Origin: Blastocladiella emersonii ATCC 22665
Taxonomy: Eukaryota > Fungi > Blastocladiomycota
Reading direction: 5' to 3'
NCBI GenBank assembly: GCA_025594325.1
Contig: JANHCV010000011.1
Span: 124,001-188,000, forward strand
Length of the DNA stretch: 64,000 bases
Shown here: positions 8,960-60,454 of the stretch, in pieces
Numbering within the stretch: position 1 is the first letter of the stretch
Layout: every line of letters begins with the position of its first letter
The notes under the pieces: generated by a model
Seen by the model: only the letters and a program-made list of their open reading frames with translations
Databases searched by the model: none
Told to the model about the DNA's origin: nothing
Program-made: the position numbers and the translations under genes

Positions 8960-10502
8960 CTGCGCAATAAAGTCACACGGCGCCCGCCGGGATCTTCTCG
9001 CACAAGTTCGCGCCGCTGCTGCTGTACCAGGCGATGCGATGGCTCGACCTCGCGGGCGTCGCTGCTGGCGAGGTGACCGAGCAGGATGTTGAGTGCATCG
9101 CGAGCACCATCAACGTCAACGGCAAGCCGATGCTCAACGTCGCGCTGCACGACTACGTGTTCCGCCCGCCCAAGCTCGAGAACCTGTCGTGGTACGAGTT
9201 TATCTCCTCGTGGTCGCGCGTCAACATGCCGCCGAAAATGCGCGAGGTCCTCGCCAACGGCGGGCGCGTTGTGCCCGCACAAGCAGAACTCGGACCAGCT
9301 GCCGACATGCCGCCCGGCACGAGGCTGTCCTTCATGGCCGACCACCCGCTGGCCAAGACGCACGAGCTGCGCAAGAACATTGTCGAGGTCGTGCCCAAAA
9401 TCGCCGGCCCGCACATGCCCGACCCGCGCAAGTTTGGCGACGTGCCTGGGTCCAAGGAAAAGTACTCGCGCATGGCGCTGCTACTGCTGCGCCATTTCCG
9501 CGTCTCGAGTGACATTTTCGACGAGAACGGCTTGGCGATCGCCAAGTTCAAGGCGTTCAAGGAGGGCCTCCAACCCGGCGACCCTGCGCTCAACCACCTT
9601 GAGTACGCCCAGGAGTACTACTTCAGTCTCGACGGTGCGCGCGCGTACCGTGAGTGCCGCGATCGCGAGAACGCCGAGCTCTCGGCCAGGCTGTCGCAGG
9701 AGGAGCGCGGCGAGCTGTTCGTTCCAACTGGCGACAGCGACCGCAACGCGTCAAGCTCGCGCGCCAAGGCGACCGCCAATGAGGACCCGACTGCAGAATG
9801 GACCATGTTCACTCAGTCGCAGCAGGATACTGCCCTCGATCCGGTCATTGCTGACAACGCCATGAACGGTGCTGGCGCCGAGGTCGCGCCCACCGTTAGC
9901 GAGCAGAACTTCAAGCTGTATCGACGCGCTGGTCCCTGGTGCTGCTGCAGACCTGGTCGACCACCTGCGCCTCCCTCCAGTGCGCCCGTTCGACGTCAAG
10001 GCGGCCGTCCCACCAACGACGCTCAAGGAGCCCATCTCGGCGAACACGCTGAAGAGGTTCCTGGCGCAGCACCGCAGCGCCGCATCTGCAGCACCGCAGC
10101 GCCGCATCTGCATCGGGAAATGGGGGGTCACCCCGCTGCGGTGGATCACGAAGATCTTCCTAGATCACTGTGATCTACGAAGATCTTAGCCTTGCAGAAA
10201 TCTAGCCCCGCTCGACCAGTCCGGAGTGGTTCCGCTCGCGAAGATCTTGGCACCCAACATAGATCTACGAGTAATCTATCGTGCTCGACCACAAATCTAT
10301 GAAGTAGTCGAGCGCTTGCACTCGCGCAGCGAACGGCTTTGAGACAAAACTCGCGCGACGCGTCCTTGACTGTCAAATCACAACACCAATCATCGCTGCC
10401 TTTGTCCTCCATAGTCGCGTTTGGAATAAATCAAGCAGTTCACTGGACTATCTCTCAGTCGTGCACCAGCTCGTCGCACAGGCGGGTCGGGAGAACCGTG
10501 GT

Positions 10503-10856
10503 TCAAGTGAGCAAACAGGGAGCACCACACATGCAGCGTGACCAACGAAGTGGGAAGGGGAGAGGGCCAGGGGCATCGATTCCCTCGAGGCGGTGTGCAG
10601 GATCGGCGTCAAGGAACGTGAAAATGGAGCTGTTGAAGAGCTGCACAGGCACGACAGGAATCAAGGTTGCGGGTGCCTGCCAGTGTGCCTTCAAGCGGGA
10701 GCGAGGTCGTAAGCGGGCGTAATCACGATGTTGTAGAGCCGCCAACAACCTTGCAGGACGGATCAGCGAGTTCCGGCTCGCGCATCTCACCACGTAGCAG
10801 GTCGGGCAGAGCAGCGACGGCCAGGATCCGCAGCTGTTTCGAGATCGTTTGACCAC
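10503..10856 (-). pseudogene. Weak minus-strand coding remnant inside E1
   Basis: Protein-like stretch VPVQLFNSSIFTFLDADPAHRLEGIDAP; no family recognised. Confidence 0.25.
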
Positions 10857-11138
10857 GGAACCACGCGGCGAGGGAGTTGCAGCGTGTCAGTAATGAGATC
10901 TTCAGACCTGCGTTGTGTATGCTTGACAAGAGGGGAGGAGGCATGGACCAACGCGACGCGGCGAAGCTGTCAAGCGAGGCGGCGGTCAAGCGCACGTGAG
11001 GATAGGCGGCGTTTGTTTTGGGCAAAGTCCTTCGCTCAGTCGCCACTGCCCACCGTCCACCCTTGCCGCCGCCGACTTCCTCTCTCCTCCCCCGCCACCC
11101 GTCCTTCCCCCCAACTCCCCTACGACGCATCCAACTCC

Positions 11139-12270
11139 ATGCACTTGCTCCAGGACTGCATCGAGCACATCGCCAAGGCCTGCGCCGGGTACGAGCCAGA
11201 CCCTCCTTGCGCCGTCGTGTGCGCGCCACCTCGCCACCTCGTTACCTCGCACGAACGCCACCCACTGCTGCATCGCGCCGCGCCGCTGACGACGGCACCG
11301 GTCTGCCCTCACTGACGCCTCTCTCGTGCTCCCGCTGTCCAGGTCCCGCCGCGGCTGATACTGCCCGCCCAAGCCGGCCGACGCCACCCTTCGCCCCCTG
11401 GACGCTCTGAACCTCGCTGGCGTCGGCGACGTGGACGCTCTCGTCGATCCTGCCGTCCTACCCTTCCTCGGGCTCGAGACGGCCTGCGGTCGCATGCTCA
11501 TGGCGCCGCGTATTGTCGCCGCCATCGAGATCCCGCACAACGTGGCGCGCGCGCGGCGACGGCGCCCAGCAATCGCAAGTCCGAGGTGCTGCTCAACCTC
11601 ACGTTCGACTGGAACCGCAGGGCAACAACGTATGTTTGCGATCGTCCGCTTTGGGCTGCTTCCCGACCAGCGATCTGACCCGGACCGCCCCGCCTATAGA
11701 ACCTACGCCCGCGGCATCGTCAAGCTGATTGCCCATGGCACCCGCTCGCGCACCCTAGGCGACCTGTCCCCCTCCCCAAGTTGTGCGTGTGTTTTCGCGT
11801 GTCTGGTCGCCCACGCTAACGCCACCGCTGGCCGACGTAGCAAAGCTGCCCGGGCCGCACCTGTTTGCCATCGTGGATTGACTCGCACCTGATCGCACGC
11901 TCGTCGACATGGTGTACTTCATTGAGCTGGTACGCGTCGCGCACAATCCTGACTCGCTTCGTAGCTCACGCCCCAACGTGTCTGTGTAGTTTGCTCCCGT
12001 GGTCCAGTCGTACGTGCAGGGGTCGGCGGCGCCCATCGTGGATGTCGACATGTTCCGCCGCAGCTACTTCCACTCGCTGGTCGCGAGCATCGAGCGTCGC
12101 CGGGCCGCTCAGCCGTTTGTCCGCATGACACGGAGGAGGTCGTGCGCCGGTCGTTCACCAAGTCCACTGCCGCTGCCGCTGCCGCTGCGACCGCAGCCTC
12201 GGCGGCGGGTGCCCGAGGCGCGAGTCCGTACGGAGTAGCGCTGGATAGCGACGACGACGACGACGCGTAG
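11139..12270 (+). pseudogene. Multi-exon gene remnant inside E1
   Basis: ATG at 11139. Introns at 11189-11342, 11630-11699, one ending at 11840, and 11930-11989, with CTRAC branch sites. The spliced frame reads MHLLQDCIEHIAKACAGSRRG*YCPP...EVLLNLTFDW...YARGIVKLIAHG...KLPGPHLFAIVD*LAP...FRRSYFHSLV. It has two in-frame TGA stops and frameshifts. Confidence 0.7.
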
Positions 12271-14349
12271 ATTTGATGCACAATACAGATCTGTTTCTCA
12301 CCCATCGAACTCTCCCGTTGTGTGCTGAGATCTCTGGCTTGACAAAGATCGCTTGAAAATCTCACAGATCCCCTCAGCGGCGGGGAATCTACGTTCGTTG
12401 CAAAGATCTATCTGCCCTGACGGAGTCGAGCTCGGCTGGACGGGAGGGATAGATCTATGGTGAGATCTATAGAAAACATAGGTTTGCAGTGGATTTCTAC
12501 CTAGATCTTCCCCAGCTATTTTGGCCCCCGAAACCCTAAGATCTATGAGAGATCTAGCTAGATCTCTTTGAGATCTTAACCCCCAATTTCCCGATGTGCA
12601 GCACCGCAGCGCCGCATCTGCAGCGCCGGCCGCTGCTGGAACAGCTCCTGTCGCTCCGCAAGGCGGGCAGTCGCCGCTCGTCGGCGCGTCAACCACGTCA
12701 GACGCTGCTGCCGAGTCGCAGATCGGCGTCGATCCCAAAAACGTTGTTGAGGACGGTCCAGAAGCGCCAGAAGTACCCGCCGCCGACGTTTGGCGCGGTA
12801 CCTTCGCCGCGAGATCAACGGAATCTGCAGCGAAGCGCAAGCGGTTCCTCGTCATGAAGGCTGCAGACTCGCTCAACAACTTTGACCACGCGACTCGCGG
12901 CAAGGAGTGGACGGAGACGGAGCAGCGCACCAAGCACACGCCGGCGTACGCGAGCCTCGCGCAGGTTTCGCTCAAGTTCAACCTGAACAAGGAGCAGCAC
13001 CGCGCGTTCGTGCTCTTCCTCATGCCGCTCATCGCCACGTTCATTGGCGGCGACAGCGGTGTCGCCGAGGCCGCCGCGTCATTGGATCCAGGCGCCCTCG
13101 CGTCGGGCCGCGACCGGCCAAACGCACCAGCTCTCGCCTCGCTTCCGCCCATGAGCAAGGATCGCTCGCCAATCATTCTCACAGGCTCAGGCGGCACGGG
13201 CGGCACGGGCAAGTCGCGCGTCATTGACGCGATCCGGTACTTTCTCGCGTCCTGGAACCGCGAAAAGTGCATGATGGTCATGGCCATGACGGGCATCGCT
13301 GCCGCCAACATTGTTGGTACCACCATCCACGCTGCGTTCCGGCTCTCGCTCAAGGGGGAGAGTCTCAGCCCCAACATCAAGCGCATCCGCACCGACTCTG
13401 CTGGCGCCAGCGCGTGGCAAGGACGTCACGCCGTGATCATCGACGAGTTCTCCATGTGCAACGCGCAGCTGCTCGGACGGGTCGATGCGAGCCTTTGCAA
13501 CCTGCGTCGGTGCGACAAGCCGTTTGGCGGCTGCATCATCATGCTCGCCGGCGACCATTTGCAGCTTCCACCAGTGAACGGCACGGCGCTGTTCCAGCTA
13601 CCCGAGGTGCTCAACAATGCGCCAGACTCGTTCTTCGAGCGGCTGCTCGCGTATGACACCACGGGCGCGAAAAAAAAGCACTCAGGCCAGCTCATGTACT
13701 GGCGCGCCCAACGTGTTGTTCGACTCGTGCGCAGCAACCGGTTCGTCAACGACCCATCATGGGGCAGGTGCATCGGAAATCGCGGATCACAAATTGTGCG
13801 GCCAGCTGCAAATTTGCACTCAATTCTTGGGCCGGGTCGGGTGAGGGTCGAAATCGCATATCAGGATTTCTGGTGAATGCGATACATGAGCGTGATGGGT
13901 GAGGTCAGGGGGATTTTTTGCTGGTGGTCGTGGTGGTTATAGTCGCCCTTGAAGTAAGTTGGACTTTTCATCACAACGGCTCAGTCGATTGCGCTGTACT
14001 CGAAGGTGATGGACTGACCGTGCTAAGAGCTACAAAAGAGATAATTAAGCGTTGGGGTGGTTGGAAGCCGGGTGTCAAGACAAAAATGGCGATCGGATTC
14101 TCAACGCTAACACACCGCCAGGGTTGATTCAAGAAGCTAACCTCGAAAGTCGTTCCTGCGCAACGGAGTGAAGGATGTGACTCGCGCAAATATATTTAGC
14201 GCTCAGAGGAGCACGGAAACGATAGACACAGTTTGAATTCATGGGGTCGCAAATCGAGTACAGCATCCAATCCAGAGGGTAAACAGGCTTTCTCCTTGCG
14301 GCAAACTGGTCAACTACCTCTACCTCGGTAGATAAACTTGGTTTCCTGG

Positions 14350-14976
14350 CCGGGATTGCAGTTTAAAGAGGTCGAAACCTATGTTCGCCTGAAGGGGTTT
14401 GCGGCACGCATGCTGTTGCGGATTGCGCTCGCGGATCGAGCTTATTAGGTGGACGCCTACCGGCGCGGCAGGCCAAGCGGCCAAAAAAAGTTGATTTTCT
14501 TCAATTGTTTGTACGTGGCCGCATACTGGCCCGATTCGTACAAGTTGACGAGAGCGAGCGAGTGAAGGACCGCTTCCGCTAGCACGAATGGACAACAATT
14601 GCCAGCCTCGAGTAAAGCTGGTGAGCCCTGGTACTTAGCTTGCTCACAATTCAGCGCTTCAGCGAGAGCGCGCGGGACGGTCGCCCAACCAGTGAAGCAC
14701 GTCCACGGCGCTGAACCGGCACGTTGCAAATCTTTCCAGACCTGAATGAGGTGCATGCGATCCAGTCGGTGCGATTGAGCGCCTGGAACGCATCAAAGTC
14801 CACTTCAGAGAGTTGCGAATGGTGCTATTCCTTTGCTTGAACACAGGGTCGCGGAACGGCCATGCTCGAGCTGCCTCTGACGCTGGTAGAACATGTAACA
14901 CCCCGTGATCGAGCTTCACTATCTGCCACGCGACGATTTTAGAGTTGAAACGCGACGTGAACGTTTCCAGCTTCAT
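14350..14976 (-). pseudogene. Frameshifted gene remnant inside E2, unknown family
   Basis: Overlapping ORFs 14659..14976 and 14457..14756 join into one protein-like sequence, and an independent homolog lies at 2340-2815. Confidence 0.58.
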
Positions 14977-16111
14977 GGTAGAGTCATGGATCAGTAGGCG
15001 ACATTCTGTTCGTCACTCAAGGGCGGGTCTCCGACTTGGCGAGCGGCCCTATCAACTAGCTGAAGCTACCGGCGGTCAAATCCAAAGCGGACATGACTTC
15101 TTCTGATGCGCTGGGAGGGACAGGCGCGGCTCGTCAGCGGCTGGCGGTGCCTGTGCTACGGGTTCAGCGCGGCGCTCGAATCACGCAAGTAGACATAAAC
15201 TAGGCGCAATTTGGAAGAAATCCATGGGTTGAATACATTGCATCAACTGGCAACTACAGCATGCGTAAAACATGCACGGAAGGTGGATGGAGCAAATCAG
15301 CGAGCTGTGGCGAGCGTGTAAACTCCACCGTCCGACGCCACCGCAGGGTCACGTTGGCCGCGTCCGTTCACGCTTGGCCTGCGAGCTCGTTCAGGCGCAA
15401 GGTCCCCTTCAATCCGCGATGAATGACCTTTGCGGCTCGCTTGAGAACCTCGCGTCAGCTGCGGTACGATCCGGCCGCTGCGATGTGCTTGGTACTCGCT
15501 CTCGTGCGGCTGAGTCCAGCCGCATCCGTAACATCCGGCTGTCGTCGCGCAGGCAAGAGAGCCGAAGGCATGAGCTCGCTCTTAGTATGTTCGTACGACC
15601 GTTACACGGTTATCAGACCCGGCTCGCTTCTCGGCCCCAGTTCACGAAGGAAACGGTGGGTGCTCGCTGTGGACACGAATGCGTGGAATGGGACGGCGAG
15701 CTGCGACCCCAGCAACTGTCATGACAAGGGTCTCGTCGCTTCCAAAGCCTAACCAACATCTAAGCTTTGATCGACTCGAGAACAAAGGGGGGTAACCGCG
15801 CGGCCGCGTCACGACCCCGAACTCGCCATGCTTGCCCAATTCCTCTCTCCTCCCCTCGCAGTCCTGCTTTTAAGTGCAGCTTGTCGTTTTTTTTTTAACC
15901 GCGCGTTTCAAGGATAGCGAAACTGAGCGAGAGTCGTGGCACGGCGGGTTGCGAGACGGGGTGCGAGACGCGTCGCGAAAACACGTGTGCGGTCACCCGC
16001 ACGTGACACAGCTTGGCTTGGACTTTGCCGCGAGCGCGCGTCGGGGAAGCGAGTGACTCTTCGCCACGCCGCGGTCGGTCCCCGCTCTCTCGCTCATCAC
16101 CACTCGCTGCA

Positions 16112-17206
16112 ATGTATCACCCGTCCACCAAAGAAGCACACTACGATCTCGACGCGCGGCAACCACGCGGCCACCGTCAACAGGTACGCGTCACATCCCG
16201 CTGCCGCGCCCGCCGCCGCGCGCTTGGCTCCCATCGCGCCGACCGTCGTGTTGCGCTCCCGTGGCGGTGCGCCCGGTGTGGTGCCCTTCACACTCTGCTC
16301 TGGCGCGTCGACGACGCGCTGTGAGACCAGCGGTGTCGTCGCTGCCGCGCGTGCGCACCGTCGTACGCGGGCTCCGCCGCGCTCGTTCCTCGGGCGCAGC
16401 ACGGCGCAGCGCAAGGGGACCCCACCGGGCTACCAGCCGCGTGCGCGCTCGTCAAAGGTGCTGACACCTGTGCGGTGCCCATGTAGCCGCCGGCGCGCGT
16501 CCGCCACCAGGGACTCAACATTTGGCGACTCATGGACCTGAGACCATCGAGCCAGCCTCGCTCGCGACGGTACGCCGTCTCCGCGTGTCTCATGCACTCA
16601 CGCTGCACGCTCGCGCCAGTAGCGCCGACAGGCTCGCTCAAGCGGTTCGACCGCGGCCACCGCGTGCGTCAAGTCCCAGTCGCAGGTACGCTTGACACTT
16701 CTCGTCGCTGCGCAAGAGTTGGCGCGCGACTGACATGCTCGCTCGCATTGCTCCTCGTAGCCCCTCGTGATCCACTGGTCTCTCGCTACACTATCGACCC
16801 GCCGCCTCTCAACGGATGAACAACTGGCGCGCAGCATCCGCAAGCTGTACGGCGCCGTATTCGAGGCGACTCGGTACGCCCTCGTCACACGCCGCTCGAG
16901 GCGCAGCGCGACTCACATGAGCTCTCGGACCTTTCTTGCTTGTAGCAGCGATCTCTGACGACCATCTCGCCCGGCCGGTTTCTGTACTCGGGGTCGTGGC
17001 GCGACCTGACCGTGGATCGCAGCAAGTGCGACGCGCACGCGGTTTGGGTCACGGTCGGCGGCTTCGAGTGCGGAGACCTGGTGCTGGCGACGGCGTCTGC
17101 TCTCCGCTCGGGTACCTGCTTGTCGTGCATCGTCGTCGCGCATGGGCCGGGATTCCGACTCGCATGCCGCGCGACCCGCAGCGGTGGCGACCTGACCTGT
17201 ATCTGA
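16112..17206 (+). pseudogene. Multi-exon gene remnant inside E2
   Basis: GTACGC...TAG introns at 16570-16622, 16686-16760 and 16874-16945. Exons join as PETIEPASLAT|RRQAR...CVKSQSQ|PLVIHWSL. The last exon needs a frameshift. The start position is approximate. Confidence 0.55.
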
Positions 17207-17487
17207 GATCTCCCTGTACGCAATACACTCGCAAATTTGCACCAAAACGCAGTCCCCATCTTGAGAATATGCCATCAATTCGTGCACCAACCGGGTTGCT
17301 CGCCTCACCAATTGGCCATCAAATCTGCCATCAAGTCGCAACAGATTGAACGGCAATTGGTTGCAAATTTGCTGTCCTAGCCGAACCGCGGGCCGCCGCT
17401 CAATTTGGTGCAAATTTGCTCAGGTTTAAAATTTGCCTCCAAACCATGTAAATTGGCCGCAAATTCGCAAGGCCCGGATTTGCGATG

Positions 17488-17535
17488 TGTCTTGACGCGT
17501 TCCGCCATGGGGCAGGTGTCTCAACGCGTTCCGCC
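17488..17535 (+). repeat. 29-bp tandem duplication of the Helitron target spanning the E2 insertion site
   Basis: Copy 1 is ATGGGGCAGGTG[E2]TGTCTTGACGCGTTCCGCC. Copy 2 is intact at 17507-17535: ATGGGGCAGGTGTCTCAACGCGTTCCGCC. Confidence 0.85.
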
Positions 17536-19474
17536 TTGACAAGGCCCCCGACGAGCTGCGCCGCCTGCTCGACTTGCGCACGACCGCTCGCCTGCGCCAG
17601 TCGAGCGACGACAAGGGCAACAACGCGCTCAAGAAGATCCTCCAGACGTGCCGGCTCACAGTCATTGCGCCTGACAACTACACGCGTCACACCTTCAACC
17701 TGCTGTACACGCGGCTCGCCGCTGCGGACCCAGAACGCGTCGTGTTTCAGATCAAGGCCAGCATCACGCGCAAGAAGGAGCGAAACGGCGCAACCGTCCG
17801 CCTCCCAATTGGCGAAAGGGACCTGTTCCGTCTTGCCAAGGAGCCCGACTCGATCACTTGTTTGCCAACCATCCTCAAGGCCTTTGTCGGCATGGAAGTG
17901 CGCGTCAAGGTCAACCAGTGCGTCAAGAAGGGGTGCGCGAATGGCGCTATTGGCGTCGTGCACCACATTGACTGGTTTCCGGGCACGACGTTTACTGAGA
18001 CCGGCTCGCGCATGTACTGCCCATCGCGGGAGCCACATACTGTGTGAATCGACCTGCCCAACGCGCCGCCTGGCCCTCGGTTTCCTGGCATGCCGGCCAA
18101 TTGGCCAGACACGGTCATCCCGCTTGCCATGCACTTGGACGACTTTCTCTACAAGGAGGGCGGTATGACGTCGCGCGAGCGAACCAAACTCAAGAAACCC
18201 GAGTCCGGCGCACTGTGCGCCAGGATGGTCAAGAACTTTGATACTCACAAGCAGTACAAGGACCACGAAAAGGTCAAGATCAAGCAGTTCCCAATTGTGC
18301 CCGCCTTTGTGACAACGGCGCACGGGGTCCAAGGCGTGACCAAGAACGCCATCATCTTGACGGATCCGTCCCCAGCTGGCTCGTCTGGATCAATCAACAG
18401 GTCGTTGCTGTACGTTGCGCTCTCGCGGCTCCGCAAGAGCGCGTTCCTGTGGGTTCTCCATCCGATCCCGGACAGCGTGTATGACGCCATGGTCTCTGAT
18501 CCGCGGGCCGTGGCCGAAGACTTGCGGCTCCAGGCGCTAGACGTGTTGACTGAGGGCGCGTTCGCTCACAGACAAACTGTTGCGCACAACCACCCCCGAA
18601 TCGCGGAGCTCTTTTGCCACGCGATGCAAGAGCACCGCCAGATCAAGAGCGACAAGGAGGACGAGAAGAAGGCGCGTGCGCGAGAACGGTCCAGGAGGTA
18701 TCGCGAGCAGAAGCGCGCCACAGAATTGCTTCAGGAGCAGCGGAGCAAACGGCCTTGGAACATTTAGTGTACATCATATCATTCATTTTATTCAAAACAA
18801 TGTCAGTGCGTGATGGGGAGAGAGATGCGACTCTGTAGTGGCAAGCAACGTTCAGCGGTCCAAAAACTCCCACGTCAGCGTCATTCCAACGTTGCAGAGG
18901 GCTTCAGTTGAAGCGTACTCGGCTGGGAGGAAGCTCAGCACAATGGACGTGCGATCTTGGCGGAGAAGAGGTTCACTAGAGGGGACGGTGAGGAGGTTCA
19001 CGAGAGGACAACAGGCTGTATGTGGTGGCTAATACTAGCAACTGGTCAAAGGAACAAGAGAGAGAGGGGATGCGGGGGCGCGTCGTCCAATGTGAGCGGG
19101 CCGACGCGTCGCTCGGTGAGGTGAGGCGGTCCGCGGCGATGATAAAGGAGATCGGCGCGGTGCGCGTGACGCGCGTGACGCGGGCGGGGTCGCACGCGTC
19201 CGGTGACTGTGGCGCAACGCGGTCACGTGTACTTGAACTGCTTCAGCCCTCGATTGAAGACCAGACGCGAAGCGTCTAGGTGGTTCAAGTAAAATTGACG
19301 CGTCGCGCAGCGGTGACGAGGAGGGGGAACGCGTCCGAGTGGCGTCGCGTGACGCGGTGGGAAACGCGTCGCGTGGGACGTGGCTTGACTTGAAACATCT
19401 CGCACTGAGCCACGCGGCACGACCATTCACCACACCGCGCGTGCCGCTGTGACTCGACCTTCATGGTGCGGAAA

Positions 19475-19990
19475 TGCTGCGCGCCCTCGAGGTGGTGCCG
19501 CCACACCTTGAACGCGACCTTGATGGCGAGCAGCTCCTTATCAAGCACTGGGTAGTTGAGTTCCGCCGCCTTGAGCGAGCGCGAGTGAAACGCGACCGGC
19601 TGCAGCTCGCCCGCGTTGTCGCGCTGTGCCAGCACGTACCCAATGGCGAAGTTGGACGCGTCCGTCTCGACCACGAACAGCTTGTTAGGGTCCACGTGCA
19701 CCAGCACCCCACCCGTGGCGAACTGCAACTTGATGGCCTCAAACGCTGCCGCCTCTGACTCGCCCCACCGCCACGCCATGTCCTTCTGCGTGAGCCGCGT
19801 GAGCGGCAGCGCCCGCTTTGAAAAGTCGGGGATGAAGTTGCAGTAGTAGTTGGCAAGGCCAAGGAACAACTGCACCTGCTTGACCATCCGCGGCGCGGGC
19901 CACTCTGTCATGGCGCGCACCTTCCCCGGATCCATCCCAACGCCCAATGTGCTGACCACGTGCCCAAGGTACTCGCCCGTGGCGCGTCTG
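19475..19990 (-). mobile_element. Ty3/gypsy reverse transcriptase C-terminus and RNase H
   Basis: MDPGKVRAMTEWPAP...FLGLANYY..FIPDFSKRALPL...VETDASNFAIGYVL...VAFHSRSL...NYPVLDKELLAI...WRHHLEGA. Confidence 0.93.
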
Positions 19991-20860
19991 CACAGACGCG
20001 GCGCCAGCCAACCTTGGTGATGGAGGTATCAATATCATGTCGCACGCTATTGCGTGTGTGTGTGCGCGCAGGGCAGTGCAGCGCCAATGTTGAGGCTGCG
20101 GTGGAGGTTGTAGCGCCACAGCATGAGCGCAGGCGGGGACCACGCTGCGCAGGACCCGGACCGTTGTAGGGACGGGCGACAAGGACGTTGTGGCGCTGCA
20201 ATGCGCGGGTACAGGGATTACTTGGGCTCATGAGGGTGGCAAGCTGGTCTTGGAGCGGGTGCACAAGGTGCGCGCAGCTGATAGCGGCAGGCGGCCAGCG
20301 AGGTAGCAGGGACGTGCTGGGGACCAGGAGAGTTGAGGCTGAGAACGTGGAGGACAGGGAGTGGGAGGCCGGGGGGCGAAACGCAAGGAACCTGAGCAAG
20401 AGGAACGTGGGCAGCCAGCGATGATGCAGGCCAGGTGGTAGTGACGGCGACAGTGCGCAGCCAACAACAGGGTGGCGGGGGAGGTACACGGCTGGAACTT
20501 GAGCAGGCGCGCAAGCGTGACGGAGTGCTGGCGGCCATGGAACGCGAGCGCAAGCGCAAGCGGCGACGACGGGGGTGGTGGTGGGAGGTACACGGCTGGA
20601 ACTTGAGCAGGCGTGCAAGCGTGACGGAGTGCTGGCGGCCATGGAGCGCAAGCGCAAGTGCAAGCGGTGCCGCGTACGCAGCAGCGAGCGAGAGCGACCG
20701 CGGATGGCCTGGCGATCGTCACAAGGGTCGTTGCAGAGGCCGCGGGCATGGTGGTCGCGGTTGTTGCAGTTGTTGCAGTCGCCAGGCCCAGCGAGGTGCG
20801 CCTGTGGGGTGGGGCGGGGCGGTTGTTGCGGCCAGACCATTAGGAGGGCCACACGCGTAA
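19991..20860 (-). mobile_element. Degenerate gag region with a zinc-knuckle relic and a 104-bp-period tandem duplication (about 20479-20667)
   Basis: CNNCNNRDHHARGLC (CCHC-like). GGGAGGTACACGGCTGGAACTTGAGCAGG... starts at both 20479 and 20583. Confidence 0.5.
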
Positions 20861-20929
20861 GTTAACACTCAGCCTTCCGTGCATCGTGCTCAACCTTCCT
20901 CTCACACCCTGCACCTGTACGCTTCAACT

Positions 20930-20941
20930 GGTTATGAGCCC
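20930..20941 (+). other. Possible Ty1/copia-type primer-binding-site motif
   Basis: GGTTATGAGCCC resembles the copia-type PBS (GGTTATGGGCCC). No copia coding sequence follows. Confidence 0.25.
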
Positions 20942-21042
20942 TGCTCGCCCTTGAAGCTCGATGTACCTACGTACAGCCTCCGCTTTCTCCAAGTCGCTTC
21001 CACACCTCTCTGCCGCCGCGTGGTCACTGCACCCGCGCCCGC

Positions 21043-21197
21043 TGTGCTGACGTGGGCCGCGGGGAGGGCCAAATACACAATGACTAGCAAACGAGGATGT
21101 ATGTGATTGAACAGCAGGGAGCGAGAACAGAGTGCGAGCGAGCGGCGGCTCGACAATCCAAGACGTCATGGCGCACGTGCCGAACGCGCATGTGACA
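21043..21197 (-). mobile_element. 5' LTR of the Ty3/gypsy chromovirus
   Basis: Same orientation as 3565-3716, TGT...GTGACA ends, 14 substitutions in about 136 aligned bp. No matching outer TSD (TGCGC vs CCCAT). Confidence 0.78.
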
Positions 21198-21699
21198 CCC
21201 ATCAAGAGCACTATCTCTGAAGCGTGACTGGCCGCGTTTGTGCGCGCGGGAGCGCAACTTGCTCCAAGAGTAGTCGCTACATGTTGTGGAAAGGTGACCC
21301 GTTTGGCGATCTTCAGCTTGCACCGCCATGTCCGTAGTCGACGCGATCACGCTTGAGAGCAGGAAGGCGCCCGAACGGAGTGAGTGGTGGAGGTACTGGC
21401 AATGATCAGCACGGGACGCGTTTCAGCCACACCCAAGCGGTGTCCGCCACGTCCCACGTCCCACGCGGACGGCGGACGGCCAGCGGACGGCGGACGGCCA
21501 GCGGACGGCCGACCTTCGCTGTATGCACTCCCGCCCCGTCCGCCCCAACCCCTGCCTTGAGTATTCTTCTCCTCCCGCGCCGCCGACTACCTGCAACCGC
21601 TGATCGACCTACTGTCAAGCTCACCCAGCAAATCTCCGCGCACACGCATCATTCAAACCCGCACGGCCACCAGCTGCCTGCCGATCCGCGCGCACCACC

Positions 21700-44365: not shown

Positions 44366-44633
44366 ACGCCCATGTTCTGCTGACTCAGTCCGGGAAAACG
44401 CGTCAACACGGGCACCGGCGTGCGCAGTTACGCGATGCGCCTCTTAACCTCGCATCGGAGTTGTTTCAGGCTATTCCCGTTCCAGAACTTGAAAACGTGC
44501 GCCACTCGGCCCCGAACCGCGCTTCACCTGCATGTGCCGGATCGCCCTTGATTTTGACGGCGCCGGCGAAGCGCCCTCGCTCTCCTCTTCCTGCTCAGAC
44601 TCCTCGTAAGATAGACTAGACGGACACCATACC

Positions 44634-45550: not shown

Positions 45551-45594
45551 GAGAGGGGATGTATGGGTGAGAAATATACCCATCACTCGCTCTA

Positions 45595-47823: not shown

Positions 47824-48025
47824 GGTTCTATCGCGCTCTCTCTATAAACTTCTATGATGATCGCTTACCCGGGAGAGAAGGAATGCGGAGACGACGCGTG
47901 CTGTGCAAGGAGGGGGGACGCGTCGGGAGACAACCGTCTCCCATCGCGCGCGCGACCGCTATATTACGTGCGAGAATGTGTGCCAAAACCTGTGCAAAAC
48001 GCAACCGTCCCGCGCCCGCCTCGGA

Positions 48026-48991: not shown

Positions 48992-49193
48992 GGTGCGCGT
49001 CGTTGCTGTGCAGAGTGTGGGAGAGGGAGTCGAGTCCCGACTCGGCGAGCGCACTCATCCAGTGCAGATCGCGTCGCTCATCCCACGTGGATGACTCTCG
49101 CCGACGTTGCTGCTGCTGTGTATCAAAGTTTGTGTATCATATGCTATTTAGTTTGCTAGTTCGACACGCCCATATCTCGACCTTCCATCATTC

Positions 49194-52100: not shown

Positions 52101-53300
52101 GCAGCGGAGCGTCTGGGTCTCGGGCGCGTCCGTCGAAGCCGAAGCCGTCGCGGTTGGGGTGGGGACGGGCACGGCCGAGGCGCGGACCGTAGTGCGGACG
52201 GTGATGGCCGAGTTGGTGATGATGGTGAGGTTCTCGGTCGAGTTGGCGTTGCTGGCGGCGGCGCTGGACGTGTCGGTCCACTCGCGCACGCAGTGGAGGT
52301 GGTGCGGCGCGAAGCAGACAGTGCACGACCAGAGCTTGTGGTGGCGGCGGATCTCGTCCATGCAGATGACACACTCCTTGGTGCCGCGGATGAGCTCGGT
52401 GGCGAGGGAGCGGGCGAGCGGGGCAAACGAGTGCTCGTCGACGAGGGCGAGGGCGGGCGGGGCCGAGACGCGGGCGGCCTTGGGCCCGGCGGCGGCAGCA
52501 CCGGATGCGGCGCCATTGCGCGGCGGCGAGGGTACCTTGGGGTGGCTGGCGTCGCCGGCGTCGGTCAGGCCGGCCTGGAAGCCGCGGACCTTGCCGCCGC
52601 GCGGGTGGTGGTAGGGCGCGCGCGGGACGTCGACCTCGGCGGCGACGTAGGCGCGCTGCGGGTTGACGGGCGGGGTGGGCTTGGGCGGCTTTGCCTTGCC
52701 CTTGCCCTTGGCGTTGGTGCGCGACACGGTGGGCGGGATCTGGCCGTTGGCGGGCGAGGACGACGACGAGCCAGCCGTGGCGTCGGGCGCGGGGCTGTCG
52801 CGGCTGCGGTTACGACGCGGCGCCTTGGGTGGCGACGCGGTGGGCGGCCCGCCGGGCGCACCCGCAGCGGCAGCGGGGTTGCGCGGGACAAACGGCGCAG
52901 CGTCGAGCGAGAGCGCGGCGGCCTTGGCGGCAGCAGCCTTGGCGCGTTTGGCGGCATACCTGCTCTTACCCTTTGGCGAGGTGCCGCTAGAGACGGGGAT
53001 CATGGGAAGATCAGTGGTTCTGATCGGCATCACAAGGGCGGTGCGATCGCGATCGTACTCGGCAGAGACAGCAGCAGCAGCCGCGGGAGACGCAGATGGG
53101 GCCATGGTGGCCGGAGCAGAGGCGGAGGAAGCCGTAGAGGCGGACGGGTCGGGGTGGGCCATGGTGGACGTAGGGGACCGGTCCTTGGGCGGCCGCGGGG
53201 GGCGCGGCTTCTTTGAGGCCTTGGCCTGCGCCGTGCGCGGCTCGGCCGGCGCGCCCGCAGCGGCGGCAGCGGCAGCGGGTGGTGTCTCAGCGTGGTTCAT
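49194..53300 (-). CDS. FAP1: NF-X1/Fap1 (shuttle craft-like) protein: RING/PHD-like domain, NF-X1 zinc fingers, R3H
   Basis: CVICMDEI...WSCTVCFAPHHLHCVREW...CPSC; repeated CG.H.C...CH.G.C fingers; R3H FPPMKAPARSFVHALATVWG...DPEPKRNV; single exon of 1368 aa. Confidence 0.95.
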   Translation of the reverse strand: MNHAETPPAAAAAAAGAPAEPRTAQAKASKKPRPPRPPKDRSPTSTMAHPDPSASTASSASAPATMAPSASPAAAAAVSAEYDRDRTALVMPIRTTDLPMIPVSSGTSPKGKSRYAAKRAKAAAAKAAALSLDAAPFVPRNPAAAAGAPGGPPTASPPKAPRRNRSRDSPAPDATAGSSSSSPANGQIPPTVSRTNAKGKGKAKPPKPTPPVNPQRAYVAAEVDVPRAPYHHPRGGKVRGFQAGLTDAGDASHPKVPSPPRNGAASGAAAAGPKAARVSAPPALALVDEHSFAPLARSLATELIRGTKECVICMDEIRRHHKLWSCTVCFAPHHLHCVREWTDTSSAAASNANSTENLTIITNSAITVRTTVRASAVPVPTPTATASASTDAPETQTLRCPSCNTMQPAESARVYTCFCAKTVNPEPNRFLIPHSCGARCDKPLGCVAGDAHTCPLPCHPGPCSPCSAITAVPCPGGHTTRQVVCGSDAATAPIPCDRVCDAPLACGNHRCEATCHAGEHPECPVTVEVACRCGHASRTVACGQESTTWTCTTTCSATFSCGNDHVCEAVCCPLAPADHVQCPLDPAFTDYCPCGKTKLHRASCADPARTPCNSVCGQTMACGHACQMRCHDGPCRCSVEVEVTCECTAETQVRTCSGGDAAAAPFRCETVCNGAFLCRRGHRCKRTCCPASRTAIETLRAALTGGNDGGGSSGGRRRRQQNGGGRNNHYDVAAGLRQQLEAAHHQCDRACGRTLTCGAHECPFPCHAGNCNSCIEASAEPLACHCGRTVIPAPVPCGTTHAACSSPCVRERECGHPVVSYHACHPDWEPCPPCVVLVSRTCQCGKMQVTVWCSQRTTPACGERCGLDLPCGHRCSLGCHAPLFTDPEAEDGSDGSATAPAASTATSTPCQCRENCGKRRARTCGHVCSLPCHFGTACDDMGACSAKVTRTCPCGRQSVTATCTLNGNTVPLECDDRCRLVQRNRQIAEALRIAPRDADELATAARNAYPAEVLEYYRAHPTAAREIEAIMSNLVEELGFLPLAAASSSSSASSSSAASDAAVYRFPPMKAPARSFVHALATVWGIDAVSVDPEPKRNVVLTAHRRTARAPVVSLAAAAARVAADGSPIPSSADPAVAAALAARRTPKPSAAYNALRVVRTPLARKDLEPYLRLYFGATPFAVVHHGPATTLDGVFAATGMAPAPLDTLPGAPQLFDAVVQVDPSARMGPPAVQSFLHDVRGPLHSLLSDLGKAAAVRECWIDQHGRIAREAGFTVVQRRRPVVAASSSDGESGSSSDGEDSSSAASAAATEIRRVVSPVLVAEKPAGPSFVSNNAFAGLAELMDAAGDRDAASDDGKEVVADWTTLM

Positions 53301-54400
53301 TGCAAGTCGGTGCCGAGAGCGCGGGGGAGCGGGGATCGCGCTCGGTTGAGTCGGTCGGCCCGCCCGCGCGGTTGAGTCATCGCAACGGCCTCAGCGAGCG
53401 TCAGGTGATGCAGCGTGAGGCATGTGCGTCGCGACGTCAGCACGGGCGGCAGGCCAAAAGCGGGCGCGGCTGAAACGACCGGCTGCCACCCAAGCTGCCA
53501 CCCCTTGCACTGACGCGCGCCCCTCACGCGCGCCCCTCACGCGTCGCAACGCCATCAGCCTCGGTCCCCTTTCTGTTCCAGCGAAACGACGACGTGCAGC
53601 AGCGGCCCGCTCCCGACCGGTCCCCGCTCCCCGCACCTCATCCTACGCTGGCCCCACTGCCAGCCAACCTGACGCATCAACGCCCCGCACCGATCCCGCC
53701 GACGCCGTCGCCCCCACCGACGACGCGCGCTGCTGAGCCCGAGCCCGATCCCGCGCCCGGCCCTCCTCCAACGACCGCTCGACCGCTCGGCCCCGCCGCC
53801 GCGAGCCCGTTCCTCACCCAGTCGCTGCTCCGCGCGCTCCCCGGCATCGCCTGCTGCGCCGCCCCGCCCCTCTTCCGCCTCCCGCCGCTCCCGCTGCGCA
53901 CCCTTGCCGCGTCGCCTGCCGCGTCGTCGCTGTCTTCCCGCCAACTGCCGGACCCAACACCCGAGCAGCAGCAGCCGCCGCGCCTCGCCCGCCGCCGCTC
54001 CTCCATCTTTGCCCGCATCGTCGCGTCCCGCGTCCTCGACGACGTTGACGACGAATCGCCCGCCGCTGCCACCGCTGCACCGCACCTCGCGCCTGCCGCC
54101 TGCCCGACCCCGTCGCCCATCGACGCGTCGCCGCTGTCCGCCTCGCCCTCGCTCCTCGTGATCTCCGAGGAACCCAAGTCGCCGCGCGTGCCCTCGGTCC
54201 CGCTCTCGCCCCTCGCCGACTCGGCCGTCGACCTCTCCTCCTCCGAGTCGATCCCGCTCGTTGCGCCTGCCGCCGAGCCCGCTCCCACTTCCACGTCGTC
54301 GATCCGCCGCCGTGCCGTCCGCCCCCGCCGCGTACGCACCCCGTCGCCTCCTCCGCCCGCCCCGATCGTCCCCCTCGCTCGCTTCGATCTCGACGTCGCC

Positions 54401-55234
54401 ATGAGTTCCACCGCCAACCCCGCTGCCCTCGCCAACGCCGCCAAGGCGTACGAGCAGCTCAAGGCCGCCTTCTTCGCGCCCAAGCCCGACCTCGCCCAGT
54501 GCGCCGCCCACCTGACCCAGGCCAAGCTCGCCCTGGCCCAGCTCGGCACCTTCCTCGTCGCCGACCCGTCCAAGCCCTCGGCCCAGCAGGAGATGGTGCT
54601 CGCCCGCGACACGCTCGAGCTCGCCGCCCTGCTCAGCATCCGCCAGGGCGACATTGTCGCCTTCGAGCGCCACTACGCCCAGCTCGCCACCTACTACATT
54701 GACTACGCCGCCGTGCTCGCCGAGTCGCCGCGCCACCTCATGCTGCGCGGCCTGCACCTGCTGTCGCTGCTCGCCCAGAACCGCATTGCCGAGTTCCACG
54801 CCGCCCTCGAGCTGATCCCGCCCCAGCACCACCTCGGCAACGTGTACATCCGCCACGCCGTGCACCTCGAGCAGGCCCTCATGGAGGGCGCCTACAACAA
54901 GGTGTGGCACGCGCGCGGCGACGTGCCGGCCGAGGAGGCCCTCTTCTTCATCGACATGCTCGTCGGCACCATCCGCGACGAGATCGCCTCGTGTGCCGAG
55001 CGCTCGTACCCGTCGCTCCCGCTCAAGGACGTGGCCACGCTGCTCTTCTTCCCCGCCGGCGCCTCGCAGGCCAGCGACGTGCTCGCCTTCTGCAAGGCCC
55101 GCACCTGGGACGTGAACGCCGCCGACGGGTCCGTCCGCTTCGCCGGCAACGAGCAGACCGAGTCCGCCCTCGACGCCCACATGGTCATGCACAACGTCCT
55201 CGGCTATGCCCGCGAGCTCGAGCGGATCGTCTAG
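54401..55234 (+). CDS. RPN12: 26S proteasome lid subunit Rpn12/PSMD8
   Basis: ARDTLE.AALLSI...FERHYAQLATYY...GLHLLSLLAQNRIAEFH..LE...LEQALMEGAYNKV...TIRDEIASC.E.SY; the first in-frame ATG is at 54401. Confidence 0.95.
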   Translation: MSSTANPAALANAAKAYEQLKAAFFAPKPDLAQCAAHLTQAKLALAQLGTFLVADPSKPSAQQEMVLARDTLELAALLSIRQGDIVAFERHYAQLATYYIDYAAVLAESPRHLMLRGLHLLSLLAQNRIAEFHAALELIPPQHHLGNVYIRHAVHLEQALMEGAYNKVWHARGDVPAEEALFFIDMLVGTIRDEIASCAERSYPSLPLKDVATLLFFPAGASQASDVLAFCKARTWDVNAADGSVRFAGNEQTESALDAHMVMHNVLGYARELERIV

Positions 55235-55382
55235 GCGGTTTTTGTTTTGGTGGATGACGCGCGTGTCTTGCACAGATTTGAACAGTTTTCTTTCTCTCCC
55301 CCACTCTCGTTCGTTGCATCTATGACCATGGCAAGTCTGTCTATTCGATTTCACACACACGAAGGGCCTCGGGCCGTGGGCA

Positions 55383-56108
55383 TCACGCGCGCTGCGCCTG
55401 CGAGTCGGCGGCCTCGCCCAGAGACGGCTGCTCGAGCGCCGGCGTCGTGACCGTCTTGACGGCCGCTGCCGCCTTGGCGGCGCTGAACAGCGCCGAGTAC
55501 CGCTCGCGCCGTGCACGGAGATCGTCCGACCCGTCCTCGTCGCGCGGCGGCAGGTACACGGCCTCGAGAGCTGGCTCGCCCGTCGGTTCGGGGGCCGCGG
55601 CCTCAGGAACGCGATCCTTGGCGTGATCCGCGGCGGCCGTCGGCGAAGTCGGCGAGAGGTACACGGCCAGCTGCGCGGCCAGCGAGTCAAACGACGCCTC
55701 GTCGCTGTCGCCGTCGCCGTCCGTCTCGCGGCTCGTGGCGGGCGCGGACTTGGCGTCGCCCTGGTCGCCGACCGCGACCGTCGGCAGGTACACTGTGTCC
55801 GAGCTCGCGCGCGTCACGGCTGCCTTGCCGTTAGCCGGCTTAGCGTTGAGGTCACGCTCGAGTCGCGACAGGTTGCAGCCGCCTTGCTTGCCGATCCAGC
55901 AGCACAGCCAAATCGACGCGAGGACGAGCATTACGGCGAAGATGACGACGCTGGAGGGGGCATTGTTCGGTGGGTCGTCGGCCGCCAGCTGGGTCAGCGG
56001 CTCGTCGCTGCTGGGCGTCGGCGCCGCGAGTGCGGACTGGATCACGCCCGTTGCGAGGAAAGCGAGCACGAAGGACGCGCCGGTAGCAAGGCGAGTAAGC
56101 GGTGACAT
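55383..56108 (-). CDS. Hypothetical single-pass membrane protein
   Basis: Signal peptide (ASFVLAFLATGVIQSALA), one TM helix (VVIFAVMLVLASIWLCCWI), acidic cytoplasmic tail. Confidence 0.65.
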   Translation of the reverse strand: MSPLTRLATGASFVLAFLATGVIQSALAAPTPSSDEPLTQLAADDPPNNAPSSVVIFAVMLVLASIWLCCWIGKQGGCNLSRLERDLNAKPANGKAAVTRASSDTVYLPTVAVGDQGDAKSAPATSRETDGDGDSDEASFDSLAAQLAVYLSPTSPTAAADHAKDRVPEAAAPEPTGEPALEAVYLPPRDEDGSDDLRARRERYSALFSAAKAAAAVKTVTTPALEQPSLGEAADSQAQRA

Positions 56109-57521
56109 GGTTGATGCGTCGAATCTGAAGCGAGAGGAGGAAGAGCGCGGTCCAGCTCAAACTCGAGTTCGTTGGTCGGTTTGCTCGCCCACCTCTCGCG
56201 GGAGGAAGCGGGATCACAAGGGTCGTGTCCAGCTGTGTGTGGCCACCGTGGCCTCAGCACTCGAGACGGTGGACAGATTCGCTCTCTCGCTCCTCAGCAG
56301 CCTTCGGGCAGTGTGGATTGCTGGGCAGCATCAGTCTCGTGGTAGACCAGCGGGCCAAACCGCGGCCGCTCGTCCGTGGCCGCGCCTGTCGGAAGGGGTA
56401 CTCCTGCGAGCCTGGTCCCACAGACATTTTTGAATACGCACCGCTCCGTTCCGAGCTCTCTTCTTGCCTGAAACGTGTCGATGAGGCCGAGGGACTGACG
56501 GCGTGAAGTGAGAGAGGTGAGGAGTGTCCGCCGCCGTCGTTGAAGGACAGGTCGAGGGGTCCACATGGCCACCGAGCAGGCGTGCCCTCAACACAGACTC
56601 GTCGCGGCTGAGCAAGAACTTGAATCGGAAGTCAGATCACGCGTGCCATCACGTCGTCCATCAGCGCGCTGTTTCAAACATGTACGACGCGCAGGTCGTC
56701 CGGCTCGTCCTTGTCAATCGGCGGGAGGTACACGGGCTCGCTTGCTGCGTCCAAAGGTAGTTTGGTCGCCTCCTCAGGCGCGCAAACGCAACAACGGCCG
56801 TACGTGTCCAGCGACGCCGTGCCACCGTGGCCACGGGTAAACAACTTGTTAGACAGGTGGCATTACGCTTCACAATTTTTCATAGTTCTATGTGGAAGTC
56901 CCGGCCGGCGTGATTATCAAGTCGGTTGGCCGTTTGATCGAATGTAAGATCGCAGTCGCGCGACGCGTCGCAAGCAAGCAGCTAACTCAAACTTGGGCAG
57001 CCGCAGTAGGCAAGAGCTGACAAGCAATCTATTCACAAAGGGAGAGGGAATAGTCGCGCATAGAGTCTGTGGCCCATGTCTATGGTCATGAAAAAGAAGT
57101 AGGGCCAGGTCCGCGCGAGGAAACACACACACACACAGCATCACCAAACCGCGCCGAACCCGCCAAGTCGATCCAGAGTCGATCGACTTGTTCTCGTTCG
57201 AGATGGCCGAGAAAATCGATCCACGCGTCGAATGAGTATCGATTAGCGTGAGCTCAAGTCATTCGACCTGTTGATCGACTTGCTTGTCATTCGACCTATG
57301 GACATGATTGATCGATCAAGTTAAAAGCTAGAACGACTCATCGAACGAGTGTGGATCGAGATATGCCCCGCGCCGATTGATAAAATGCCGATCTGTCCCA
57401 GCAGAATGTCAGACAAGTGGTCGAGCGGCGCGAGACGTGCCTCAAATGACGTCTCCACTCGCGCCGATTGAGTTCCAGCTAATTTGCAGCTCCAAATCAA
57501 CTGATGAGAATGAGCTATCCG

Positions 57522-58165
57522 TTAAGTAGCGCATCGACTTTGCACTGTATCGCCATGCTCAGGCTCGTGCGCTTCCAGCGCGTCGCCACACGTCGGGTTC
57601 GCGCCTTCGGGATCGCGGCGGTCCACAAAGTCAAGAAAGTTGGAGATCTGCGGCATCATGAGCAGCGTGAGGCTCGCGTCGTCGTCGTACACGGCGATGA
57701 GGTACTCGGTGTACCCGCCCTAGTGCGCCAACGAGGGGCGGTTCCCGTTCGGCGCGACGTGAAGGAAGGCCGAGATGGCCGACAGCGGCACGATGTGGAA
57801 CTCACACGTGGCGGGCTGCGTGGGACGGAGAGGAAACGTCTGCACGACGTAGAGGCCCGGCGGAACGACGTGCGGCACCGACTGGTACAGGTGGAAATGC
57901 TCAACGACCGTGCTTTCGAGCTGCATGCCGTCCAACTCCAGGTTGACGAGCCAGGTGCGCGTTTCCGCTCGACCAAGCGCGACGGAGGGCAACAACGCGC
58001 TCAAAACACCTCACTTGCGACTCATAAAGCTTCAAGATGTGAGAGCCCTCACGACCGCCGTGGCGACCTTCTCCACGCGAGAGGAGCGCCGCGGCGCGGC
58101 TTGCTTGCCAGCCAGGTCTGTATCGACCAAATTCCAGAGCTCACGGCGCAGCCACATGCTTGCAG
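57522..58165 (-). pseudogene. Gene remnant inside E3; by eye a BAH/BAM-like domain as at the C-terminus of Plavaka-type transposases
   Basis: TVVEHF...PPGLYVVQ...FHIVPLSAISAFLHVAP...H*GGYTEYLIAVYDD; in-frame TAG at 57720-57722 and two more stops upstream. The family assignment is recalled pattern only. Confidence 0.45.
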
Positions 58166-58344
58166 CAAGTAATTCATGGATCAGTCATAGGTGCGACGTC
58201 GTGGTGCTGTCGCCAGGAGGAGAGAGCGCCGCTGCAGCGAAGGGAGGAGCGAAACGCGTCAAAGCAATCGTCACGTGAGCTCGTCGATCGTTTCGGGACT
58301 TCGCTCGCGGCGGCTCGCGCTCCCTCGCCCCATCACCACCAACC

Positions 58345-60140
58345 ATGCCATCGACCCGCTCGATACCTGCGACCTCGTGCAACCGCCTGCACTATCACCC
58401 CTCGACCTCCATGTAACTCATGTCGACGCGCATCCGCCCGACGCCGCCACGGGCCCGCGCCGCTTGGTGACTTCCACAGTATGCGTCTCTTGCCTTCTCC
58501 TCCCCCGCGACGTGCATCTGCAGTCATTCCTCGAGTCCGCCGAGACGCCCTGCACGCGTCGACGGGACTCGCGCCCGCTGCGCTCGATGTCCACGCCGCG
58601 TTCCCACGCCTTTCGCGCCGGCTGTCCGTTCGCTCACTGACGCACTCACCTTACGACCGCTTCGCCCTGTTTCTTAGCCTTCGACGAGCACCTCGAGCAC
58701 CTCAAGCTGCAACGGCTCTTGTGGGGTCCGCGGAGACGCGTTGGCGTCGATCCTGAACAAGGTCGTGACAAGGTACGTGATGTGCGACTCGGTCTACCTC
58801 TCCTGTGGACCGAGACTAACACGTTCGCGGCCGCCATGAGTAGGGCACCGAGTACGCCAAGCAGCGGCAAGTGGGCTGACCCTCACCTGCGGCATCAACT
58901 CGCGCACGACGCGCCCAAGCCCGCGAGGTACGGTCCTTCTCCTTCGCGTTCTCGGCGCGATTTGCGCTGCGTGCGGGCACCGCCGAGCTTCGAGTTCCCG
59001 AGCGGTCTCGCTCGTGTCGTCCGTCGGTGCGGGTCTCGGCGACGTGGCTCGCGTGCTCGCGTCGAGCAGACTCTTCGCCTGACTTTTTGCTCACTTGTCT
59101 CCGCCACGTCGCCCATAGCCTCGGTCAACGACAAAAAACCTCAACTATGATCAACAACACGCTGTGAGGCGCTGCTCGGGTCGTCGCTGGCCTCAAGCAC
59201 GCGCTCGGCTGCGCGTGCGAGTCCCAGTTCTAGGCATGCGACTCGGTCGGCGTCCTCGCGGACCGACACTGACACGGCCGGCTCGAGTAGGTCATCAAGT
59301 ACACCACGCTGCAGCGGCAAGGTCCGCCTCGTCGTCCGCCCTTGCGGCACGCCCGAGGTCATGCGGTACGGGCTCCATCCCTCTTGTACTCGTTGTGATT
59401 AATCGCCCGGCACGTCGGCGCTGTCCGGTTCTACCGCACGCGAGCTGGTGCGCTCGGGTTCTGACCTGGTGCCTGCCGACACGACCCGCTCGCCCAACAC
59501 CTTCTTGATCATCGCTCACTCGTCGCCGCCACGTCACCCATAGGCTCGATCTACCACGGCAAGCTGCTGCGGGGCTCGCCCACCGACTGGTCGGCGCTGC
59601 CCTCGAGCCCGCACTCGGCCGCGTACTCGTTCATGGTCAAGGTCTGCGACCCGGTCCGACCTTCCCGTATCCCGACTCCTGGTTGACCGTTACACATTCG
59701 CAGTAGCTGAACAAGCCGGGCTCCTGCTGCACTCGCTGTCGAGTCGGGTTGCGTTCACGGCCGGGTCAAGAACTCAGACTCACGCTGACGTACGAGATCA
59801 ACTCGGTCCCCGCGCGTCCCCACCACCTGCTGCTCGAGTACCTCTTCAAGTCAACCAGCTGCACCGCGTGCCGCTGCCCTCGCCAACCGCCTTCAAGGTC
59901 CACCTGCTCGAGTCGGCCGTCGAGCAGCTCAAGTCCTTCAACGACGCGAGCAGTCAAGAAGCAGGACTGACGGCGACCGCGGCCAAGGCGACGGGGCTCG
60001 CGGCGTGTGTCACGGTCAACTGCCTGCGCGCCGACGCGTCGCTCGTCGCACGGGCGGGTCGCCGACCAAGCTGCGGCCTTCGCCGTCGGCTCTTCCTGTC
60101 CCTCCCACCTCATCCTGCGCGTGCGGCCGCGTATATATAT
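58345..60140 (+). pseudogene. Multi-exon gene remnant inside E3
   Basis: Introns at 58479-58523, 58773-58843 (GACTAAC branch) and 59642-59703, among others. Exons include GSIYHGKLLRG...LPSSPHSAAYSFMVK and VPLPSPTAFKVHLLESAVEQL. A second copy lies at 1-659. Confidence 0.6.
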
Positions 60141-60454
60141 CAAATTGCGTCTCATTCGGTGTGCCGCTCAAGGTCAGGACTTGGTCATGCGAGTGATCGT
60201 TCGACGCTTGCAGCGGACCCGATCAACATGTTACTTTTATCAATCGGGCAGGAAAAGATCTCGTTCGATAGTTGGAGTGGTCACACGACGCGTCGTTCAA
60301 GTGCACGTGAAATCTCGATCGACGCGTCAGGTCAAGTCGATTAAAGGGTCGATCAAAAAAGTAAAACATCGGTTCGACGTCGATCGATTTTATTTGACTG
60401 GGGCGCGGTTCGGTGATGCACACACACAATGGGAAGAAATGAAAGGCGGAGTCC

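Follow-up and report, generated by a model that had tools for sequence, protein, structure and literature searches.

A stretch of 64 kb from Blastocladiella emersonii ATCC 22665 (assembly GCA_025594325.1), referred to here as the window, contains three DNA elements, E1, E2, and E3, whose ends all begin with CATC (Table 1). E1 and E2 are inserted in a plus-strand Helitron, which is itself nested in a minus-strand Ty3-type retrotransposon with long terminal repeats (LTRs; 3581-3717 and 21062-21198, 90% identical). E3 has ordinary high-GC genes on both sides and is inserted within an (AC)n tract. The three elements are mobile insertions and probably represent PlavakaB-type DNA transposons (CMCT clade) of the non-autonomous, cut-and-paste kind; their ends, target site duplications (TSDs), and multi-copy status are demonstrated, as are empty paralogous sites for E1 and E2. 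The window was complemented by: (i) Logan contigs from four sequencing runs, mapped onto positions 10001-16000, which provide the read-based support; and (ii) B. emersonii loci L001-L011, which were fetched via paralog proteins.

Table 1. Elements, repeats, and genes discussed in the text. Positions refer to the window unless a locus is named.
Feature	Position	Strand	Remarks
Fragment of another CATCACC copy	1..661	-	Clipped by window start
Ty3-type LTR element enclosing the Helitron	3581-21198	-	Integrase 7019-7630; RNase H 19288-20028
Helitron Rep/helicase copy, host of E1 and E2	8971..19240	+	PIF1 domain in 12596-13873; UvrD_C_2 in 18048-18764
22-mer GCAGCACCGCAGCGCCGCATCT, two copies left of E1	10066..10109		Third copy 12598-12619; together the target tandem array
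E1 left TSD copy, TG	10109..10110		Right copy 12597-12598
E1, non-autonomous element, 2486 bp	10111..12596		CATCGGGAAAT termini; no coding signal
E2 left TSD copy, TG	13769..13770		Right copy 17488-17489
E2, non-autonomous element, 3717 bp	13771..17487		Termini CATCGGAAATC / CATCGCAAATC; subterminal CAAATTTG palindromes; no coding signal
29-bp E2 target, second uninterrupted copy	17506..17534		First copy 13758-13770 plus 17490-17505, split by E2
E3 left flank, CAG	57136..57138		Right flank CAC 60419-60421; inside (AC)n
E3, old rearranged CATCACC-family member, 3280 bp	57139..60418		Termini CATCACCAAACCGCGCC / CATCACCGAACCGCGCC; subterminal (T)CGATC(G) palindromes
Pseudogene of the family's small orphan gene	57525..58010	-	Strong signal in GC at third codon positions (GC3); in-frame TAG where paralogs have Q
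Large orphan gene remnant in E3	59078..59365	+	About the first 90 N-terminal residues
CATCACC reference copy, 3769 bp	L002:4086-7854		Termini CATCACCAAACCG; TGGATCCA palindrome arrays near each end
Divergent orphan gene pair in L002	4617-6296 and 7001-7441	- and +	Paralogs P0001-P0018; only in B. emersonii

Ends and subterminal arrays

The boundaries of E1-E3 in Table 1 are those of a preliminary description of the window, and inverted ends were located at each of them; for E1 and E2, copies found elsewhere stop at 10111 and 13771, respectively. The terminal inverted repeats (TIRs), described as 11-20 bp long and starting with CATC, match at 17 of 18 nt in E1 and at 16 of 17 in E3 (17 of 18 when the flanking G..C is counted). 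The terminal motif is CATCGGGAAAT(T/G)GG in E1, CATCG(G/C)AAATC in E2, and CATCACC(A/G)AAC in E3, and the end signatures of the families are CATCGGGAAAT, CATCG(G/C)AAATC, and CATCACCAAACC. A core of CATC, two or three variable bases, and AAAY, in which CATC is invariant, is common to all three elements and to the published ends of PlavakaB. The termini of PlavakaB families are 5'-CATCA..TGATG-3', with TSDs of 2 or 3 bp (Kojima 2025, Biology 14:1741, PMC12730594). E3 and all copies of the CATCACC family to which it belongs start with CATCACC and end with GGTGATG, and thus carry the CATCA..TGATG ends. The ends of E1 and E2, CATCG..CGATG, share four of the five bases of the CATCA motif, and the AAAT(T)GG that follows matches PlavakaB-1_SLL (CATCAGAAATTTGG).

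Short palindromes are arrayed inside these ends. In E1, 14 of the 15 AGATCT palindromes fall within the terminal 450 bp, clustered at both ends, while the CAAATTTG palindromes of E2 are inverted at its two ends; the palindromes are of the CGATCG type in E3 and of the GGATCC type in the family of L002, the locus that holds the CATCACC reference copy. In E1, E3, and L002, palindromes with a GATC core are positioned ~33 and 44 bp inside either terminus, a spacing that points to one common mode of end binding.

Comparison of the interiors of E1, E2, and E3 revealed no shared DNA similarity, as the preliminary description had observed. The tblastx matches of the elements to the window were compositional noise only, and the real matches had no frame preference. 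A codon-position signal is absent from E1 and E2, which are two CATCG-ended families without genes.

Insertion sites and target duplications

The TG/TG flanks that had been reported for E1 and E2 were confirmed as a perfect 2-bp duplication at each element. Perfect duplications also flank the copies in L009 (TG/TG, 2 bp), L002 (TC/TC, 2 bp), and L010 (TCG/TCG, 3 bp), so that five of the eight complete copies have one, against an expectation by chance of ~8% per copy. Because this far exceeds the expectation, the 2-3 bp duplication is considered real, with a variable sequence. Three of these five perfect duplications are TG, possibly hinting at a mild preference. The common TG/CA target rule that had been proposed for the group does not hold, since other copies are flanked by TC, TCG, TC/GC, or CA/GC, and the left flanks of the other E1 and E2 copies in the Logan contigs are not TG. 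The longer repeats near the elements are tandem target copies, not flanking TSDs.

Copies of E1 elsewhere are represented by about five contigs per run, which have unlike left flanks and each stop exactly at 10111. The site without E1 is found in one Logan contig, which joins 10065 to 12598. When E1 plus TG, and E2 plus TG and 29 bp, are excised in silico, an uninterrupted Helitron frame of 946 amino acids extends from 8971 to 18044. The 22-mer array at the E1 site may predate the insertion, because the Helitron frame is kept with three 22-mers and lost with one or two; to the contrary, the E1-less contig contains the 22-mer once. An assembly collapse was judged an unlikely source of this single copy by reasoning, not computation, as a collapse of the three-copy array at k=31 would leave at least two. 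A 24-bp TSD for E1 was also rejected, because excision of E1 with 24 or 46 bp breaks the Helitron frame and excision with 2 bp preserves it. Contigs from the sample omit the E1 segments 10143-11050 (906 bp) and 11239-11683 (443 bp), so the E1 family also includes shorter copies that arose by deletion.

For E2, a second copy is represented by one Logan contig that has a different flank and stops exactly at 13771. Another Logan contig shows the site without E2: it reads ...GGTG and then directly TCTCGACG, with position 13770 running straight into TCTCGACGCGTTCCGCCTCGACAAGG. TG is present there once, in line with the reduction to a single TG that the preliminary description had anticipated. In L001, a Helitron paralog that is more distantly related likewise has an empty E2 site. 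The 29-bp duplication next to E2 is missing from both this paralog and the empty-site contig, and the second 29-mer shifts the Helitron frame that bears the coding signature (GC3 and codon composition). The two 29-mers differ by TG versus CA (17493-17494 and 17522-17523), where the empty contig has the CG from which both derive; CpG decay on opposite strands, once the target had been duplicated, leaves just such a difference. For E2, a long TSD was rejected because the left flank lacks the 31-mer that it requires.

With the elements removed in silico, the sites consist of tandem repeats, namely 3.4 copies of the 22-mer for E1, 2.0 copies of the 29-mer for E2, and 11.5 copies of (AC) for E3. 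According to a rough sum of the listed arrays, such repeats cover only ~2% of the window. Insertion of PlavakaB-type elements could conceivably be tied to short tandem repeats, either through a transposase preference for repeat-distorted DNA or through an integration that sometimes makes a 20-30 bp tandem target copy, though we consider such a tie rather doubtful.

E3 and the CATCACC family

E3 belongs, in decayed form, to the CATCACC family, in which the 3.8-kb reference copies have two orphan genes and no recognisable transposase. The codon-position signal in E3 is clear only on the minus strand, at the small-gene pseudogene. An exhaustive HMMER search with this piece of the small gene returned a single match, a B. 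emersonii protein; a further search with the small gene returned six paralogs, all from B. emersonii, and the loci fetched from these revealed the family. Its copies were found across L001-L011 and number at least 12 in the assembly, so that further copies with the described ends exist for this family as well as for E1 and E2. E3 is an old relative, with 76-82% identity over 1.7 kb. Relative to the L002 reference, the copies in L003, L004, L006, L007, L009, and L010 are 94-96% identical, and others 84-89%.

Flanked by CAG and CAC, E3 probably has a TSD of 3 bp in which one base is mismatched; the G of its left flank interrupts an otherwise perfect (AC)n run. The preliminary description had taken the site as a TG target with one extra base, and the 3-bp TSD is the better reading of these flanks. 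At the L002 copy, the 9-mer CACGGGCTC lies at the left junction (4077-4085) and recurs 25 nt past the right junction (7880-7888), which resembles the arrangement at E2; the other five CATCACC copies examined have no comparable repeat arrangement.

In the reference copy, the two divergent genes encode ~145 (small gene) and ~390 (large gene) amino acids. The half of the L002 element with the large gene (1-2537) has a synonymous divergence (dS) of 0.03-0.06 among copies, and the half with the small gene (2538-3769) a dS of up to 0.24. Several copies also have an extra segment of 85-100 bp at the boundary between the halves. The contrast in dS and the boundary segment suggest that the copies are mosaics or that a small element is nested in them.

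Other features were observed around these elements. In L001, a second Helitron paralog (7313-10768 and 14188-16436) is interrupted by ~6.8 kb that includes a CATCACC copy without its left terminus. In the window, an AT-richer stretch without a coding signal occupies positions 662-3560, and its part at 2379-2806 shares 67% identity with the interior of E2 (14615-15035). A 104-bp unit close to the end of the LTR element is repeated 1.9 times with 93% identity (20470-20667).

Classification and comparison with known systems

The preliminary description had assigned E1-E3 to a dead or non-autonomous CMC/Plavaka-like lineage with CATC ends, and this agrees with PlavakaB, whose ends and TSDs are alike (PMC12730594). 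PlavakaB membership is drawn from ends and TSDs only, because no recognisable transposase is encoded by E1-E3 or found among the CATCACC proteins. Pfam scans of every sizeable internal open reading frame (ORF) in E1-E3 gave no match even at E-values up to 10, and this includes PF18759, the RNase H-fold transposase that the preliminary description had proposed to look for. Among other cut-and-paste superfamilies, Tc1/mariner was rejected on its TA duplication, the TSDs here being TG, TC, and TCG, and hAT, Mutator, and P were rejected on their TSDs of 7-11 bp, the empty E2 site showing that TG alone is duplicated at the termini.

Several points weigh against the PlavakaB assignment. The TIR of E2, which had been included in the 11-20 bp range, is weak (12 of 15 matching), and the ends of E1 and E2 have CATCG where PlavakaB has CATCA. 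The TSD has one mismatch at E3 (3 bp) and at L007 (TC/GC, 2 bp), and L005 has none (CA/GC) though it is a complete CATCACC copy. Neither the window nor the fetched loci showed a Plavaka transposase, and none is linked to these ends. In addition, the Logan runs and the assembly come from one sample, so the runs are not independent evidence.

The elements might instead belong to another superfamily with short TSDs (Mirage or EnSpm within CMC, or an ISL2EU/PHIS type), their likeness to PlavakaB ends being due to convergence. CA..TG termini with TSDs of 2-5 bp are general to CMCT lineages, and no transposase in E1-E3 or the CATCACC copies speaks to the contrary. However, the likeness to the published PlavakaB ends spans 11-14 nt, well beyond CA, the mixture of 2- and 3-bp TSDs is exactly as reported for PlavakaB, and EnSpm has CAC..GTG ends with 3-bp TSDs, which makes this explanation improbable.

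Somewhat less credible still is that the 3.8-kb CATCACC elements are autonomous, with one of the two orphan proteins being a new transposase or the element a complete transposition module. Both genes are retained in most copies, the small gene is under moderate constraint (ratio of nonsynonymous to synonymous divergence, dN/dS, ~0.46 at dS 0.24), and the 94-96% identity of several copies suggests recent activity. Word-based and profile searches found no homologue of either gene outside B. emersonii. On the other hand, no catalytic motif was identified, Pfam scans of both proteins gave no match even at E-values up to 10, and their AlphaFold models were unusable, with predicted local distance difference test (pLDDT) scores of 29 and 33. 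Protein-language-model neighbours were weak (DUF6532 at 0.71, without Pfam confirmation), and most of the large protein is predicted to form helices. Moreover, the family with matching ends has a large DDE enzyme as its known transposase. That E1, E2, and E3 are unrelated and share CATC through a coincidence of boundary drawing is very improbable: the interiors have nothing in common, the E2 palindrome differs, and the E2 TIR is weak, but the boundaries follow independently from other copies and from empty sites, CATCGG(G)AAAT is common to E1 and E2, and GATC-core sites lie at equal distances from the ends in E1, E3, and L002.

If E1-E3 are PlavakaB-type elements, a Plavaka DDE transposase whose gene lies elsewhere in the genome would act on them in trans. 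It would recognise the terminal CATC-N2-3-AAAY motif as well as the family-specific palindromes (AGATCT, CGATCG, GGATCC, or CAAATTTG), whose arrays begin ~33 and 44 bp in from each terminus. Excision would then be followed by insertion through a staggered cut of 2 or 3 bp, leaving the short duplication.

The preliminary description had considered the three elements a candidate undescribed transposon group. This is not the case, because the PlavakaB pattern of ends and TSDs was published in December 2025 (PMC12730594); E1-E3 are new families, and new for the phylum, not a new kind of element. Three non-autonomous families are thus documented, one of which bears two species-restricted orphan genes. 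A survey in 2017 detected almost no DNA transposons in the sole blastocladiomycete then sampled (PMC5751038). The occurrence described here extends the known range: PlavakaB-type elements, so far defined in mushroom-forming fungi, would now be placed in Blastocladiomycota. The first 11-14 terminal bases would then be conserved across fungal phyla, providing a simple signature by which the many TIR elements of this genome that are still unclassified could be annotated.

Plavaka is grouped with EnSpm, Mirage, Chapaev, and Transib in the CMCT clade, and its DDE transposase (PF18759) contains C(2)C and H(3-4)H motifs (PMC12730594). The PlavakaB termini printed in Figure S2 of the same study are CATCAGAAATTTGG for PlavakaB-1_SLL, CATCAGTAAATG for PlavakaB-2_SLL, and CATCACGAAAC for PlavakaB-1_AuSu. 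Over 11-14 nt, these resemble E1 and E3, PlavakaB-1_SLL being comparable to E1 (CATCGGGAAATTGG) and PlavakaB-1_AuSu to E3 (CATCACCGAAC). In contrast to the published families, which are autonomous, 6-9 kb long, and from Agaricomycotina, the elements described here are 2.5-3.8 kb long, lack a transposase, and reside in a blastocladiomycete. Their dense subterminal arrays of 6-8 bp palindromes are likewise not described for PlavakaB (PMC12730594). EnSpm/CACTA elements of CMC have in common with E1-E3 short TIRs starting with CA, subterminal repeat arrays, a short TSD, and frequent non-autonomous derivatives. Membership in EnSpm/CACTA was rejected on termini and TSDs, as that group has CACTA or CAC..GTG ends with a 3-bp TSD, whereas the elements described here have CATC ends, and four of their five perfect TSDs measure 2 bp. 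Transib and RAG1 fall within the same CMCT clade (PMC12730594). Unlike the elements described here, Transib has ends of the CACAGTG type and a TSD of 5 bp. A preference for distorted target DNA has been reported for transposition by RAG, a distant relative, and the insertion of E1-E3 into tandem repeats may be a parallel. If the link to tandem repeats were true genome-wide, it could inform target choice or processing in this RAG/Transib-related clade.

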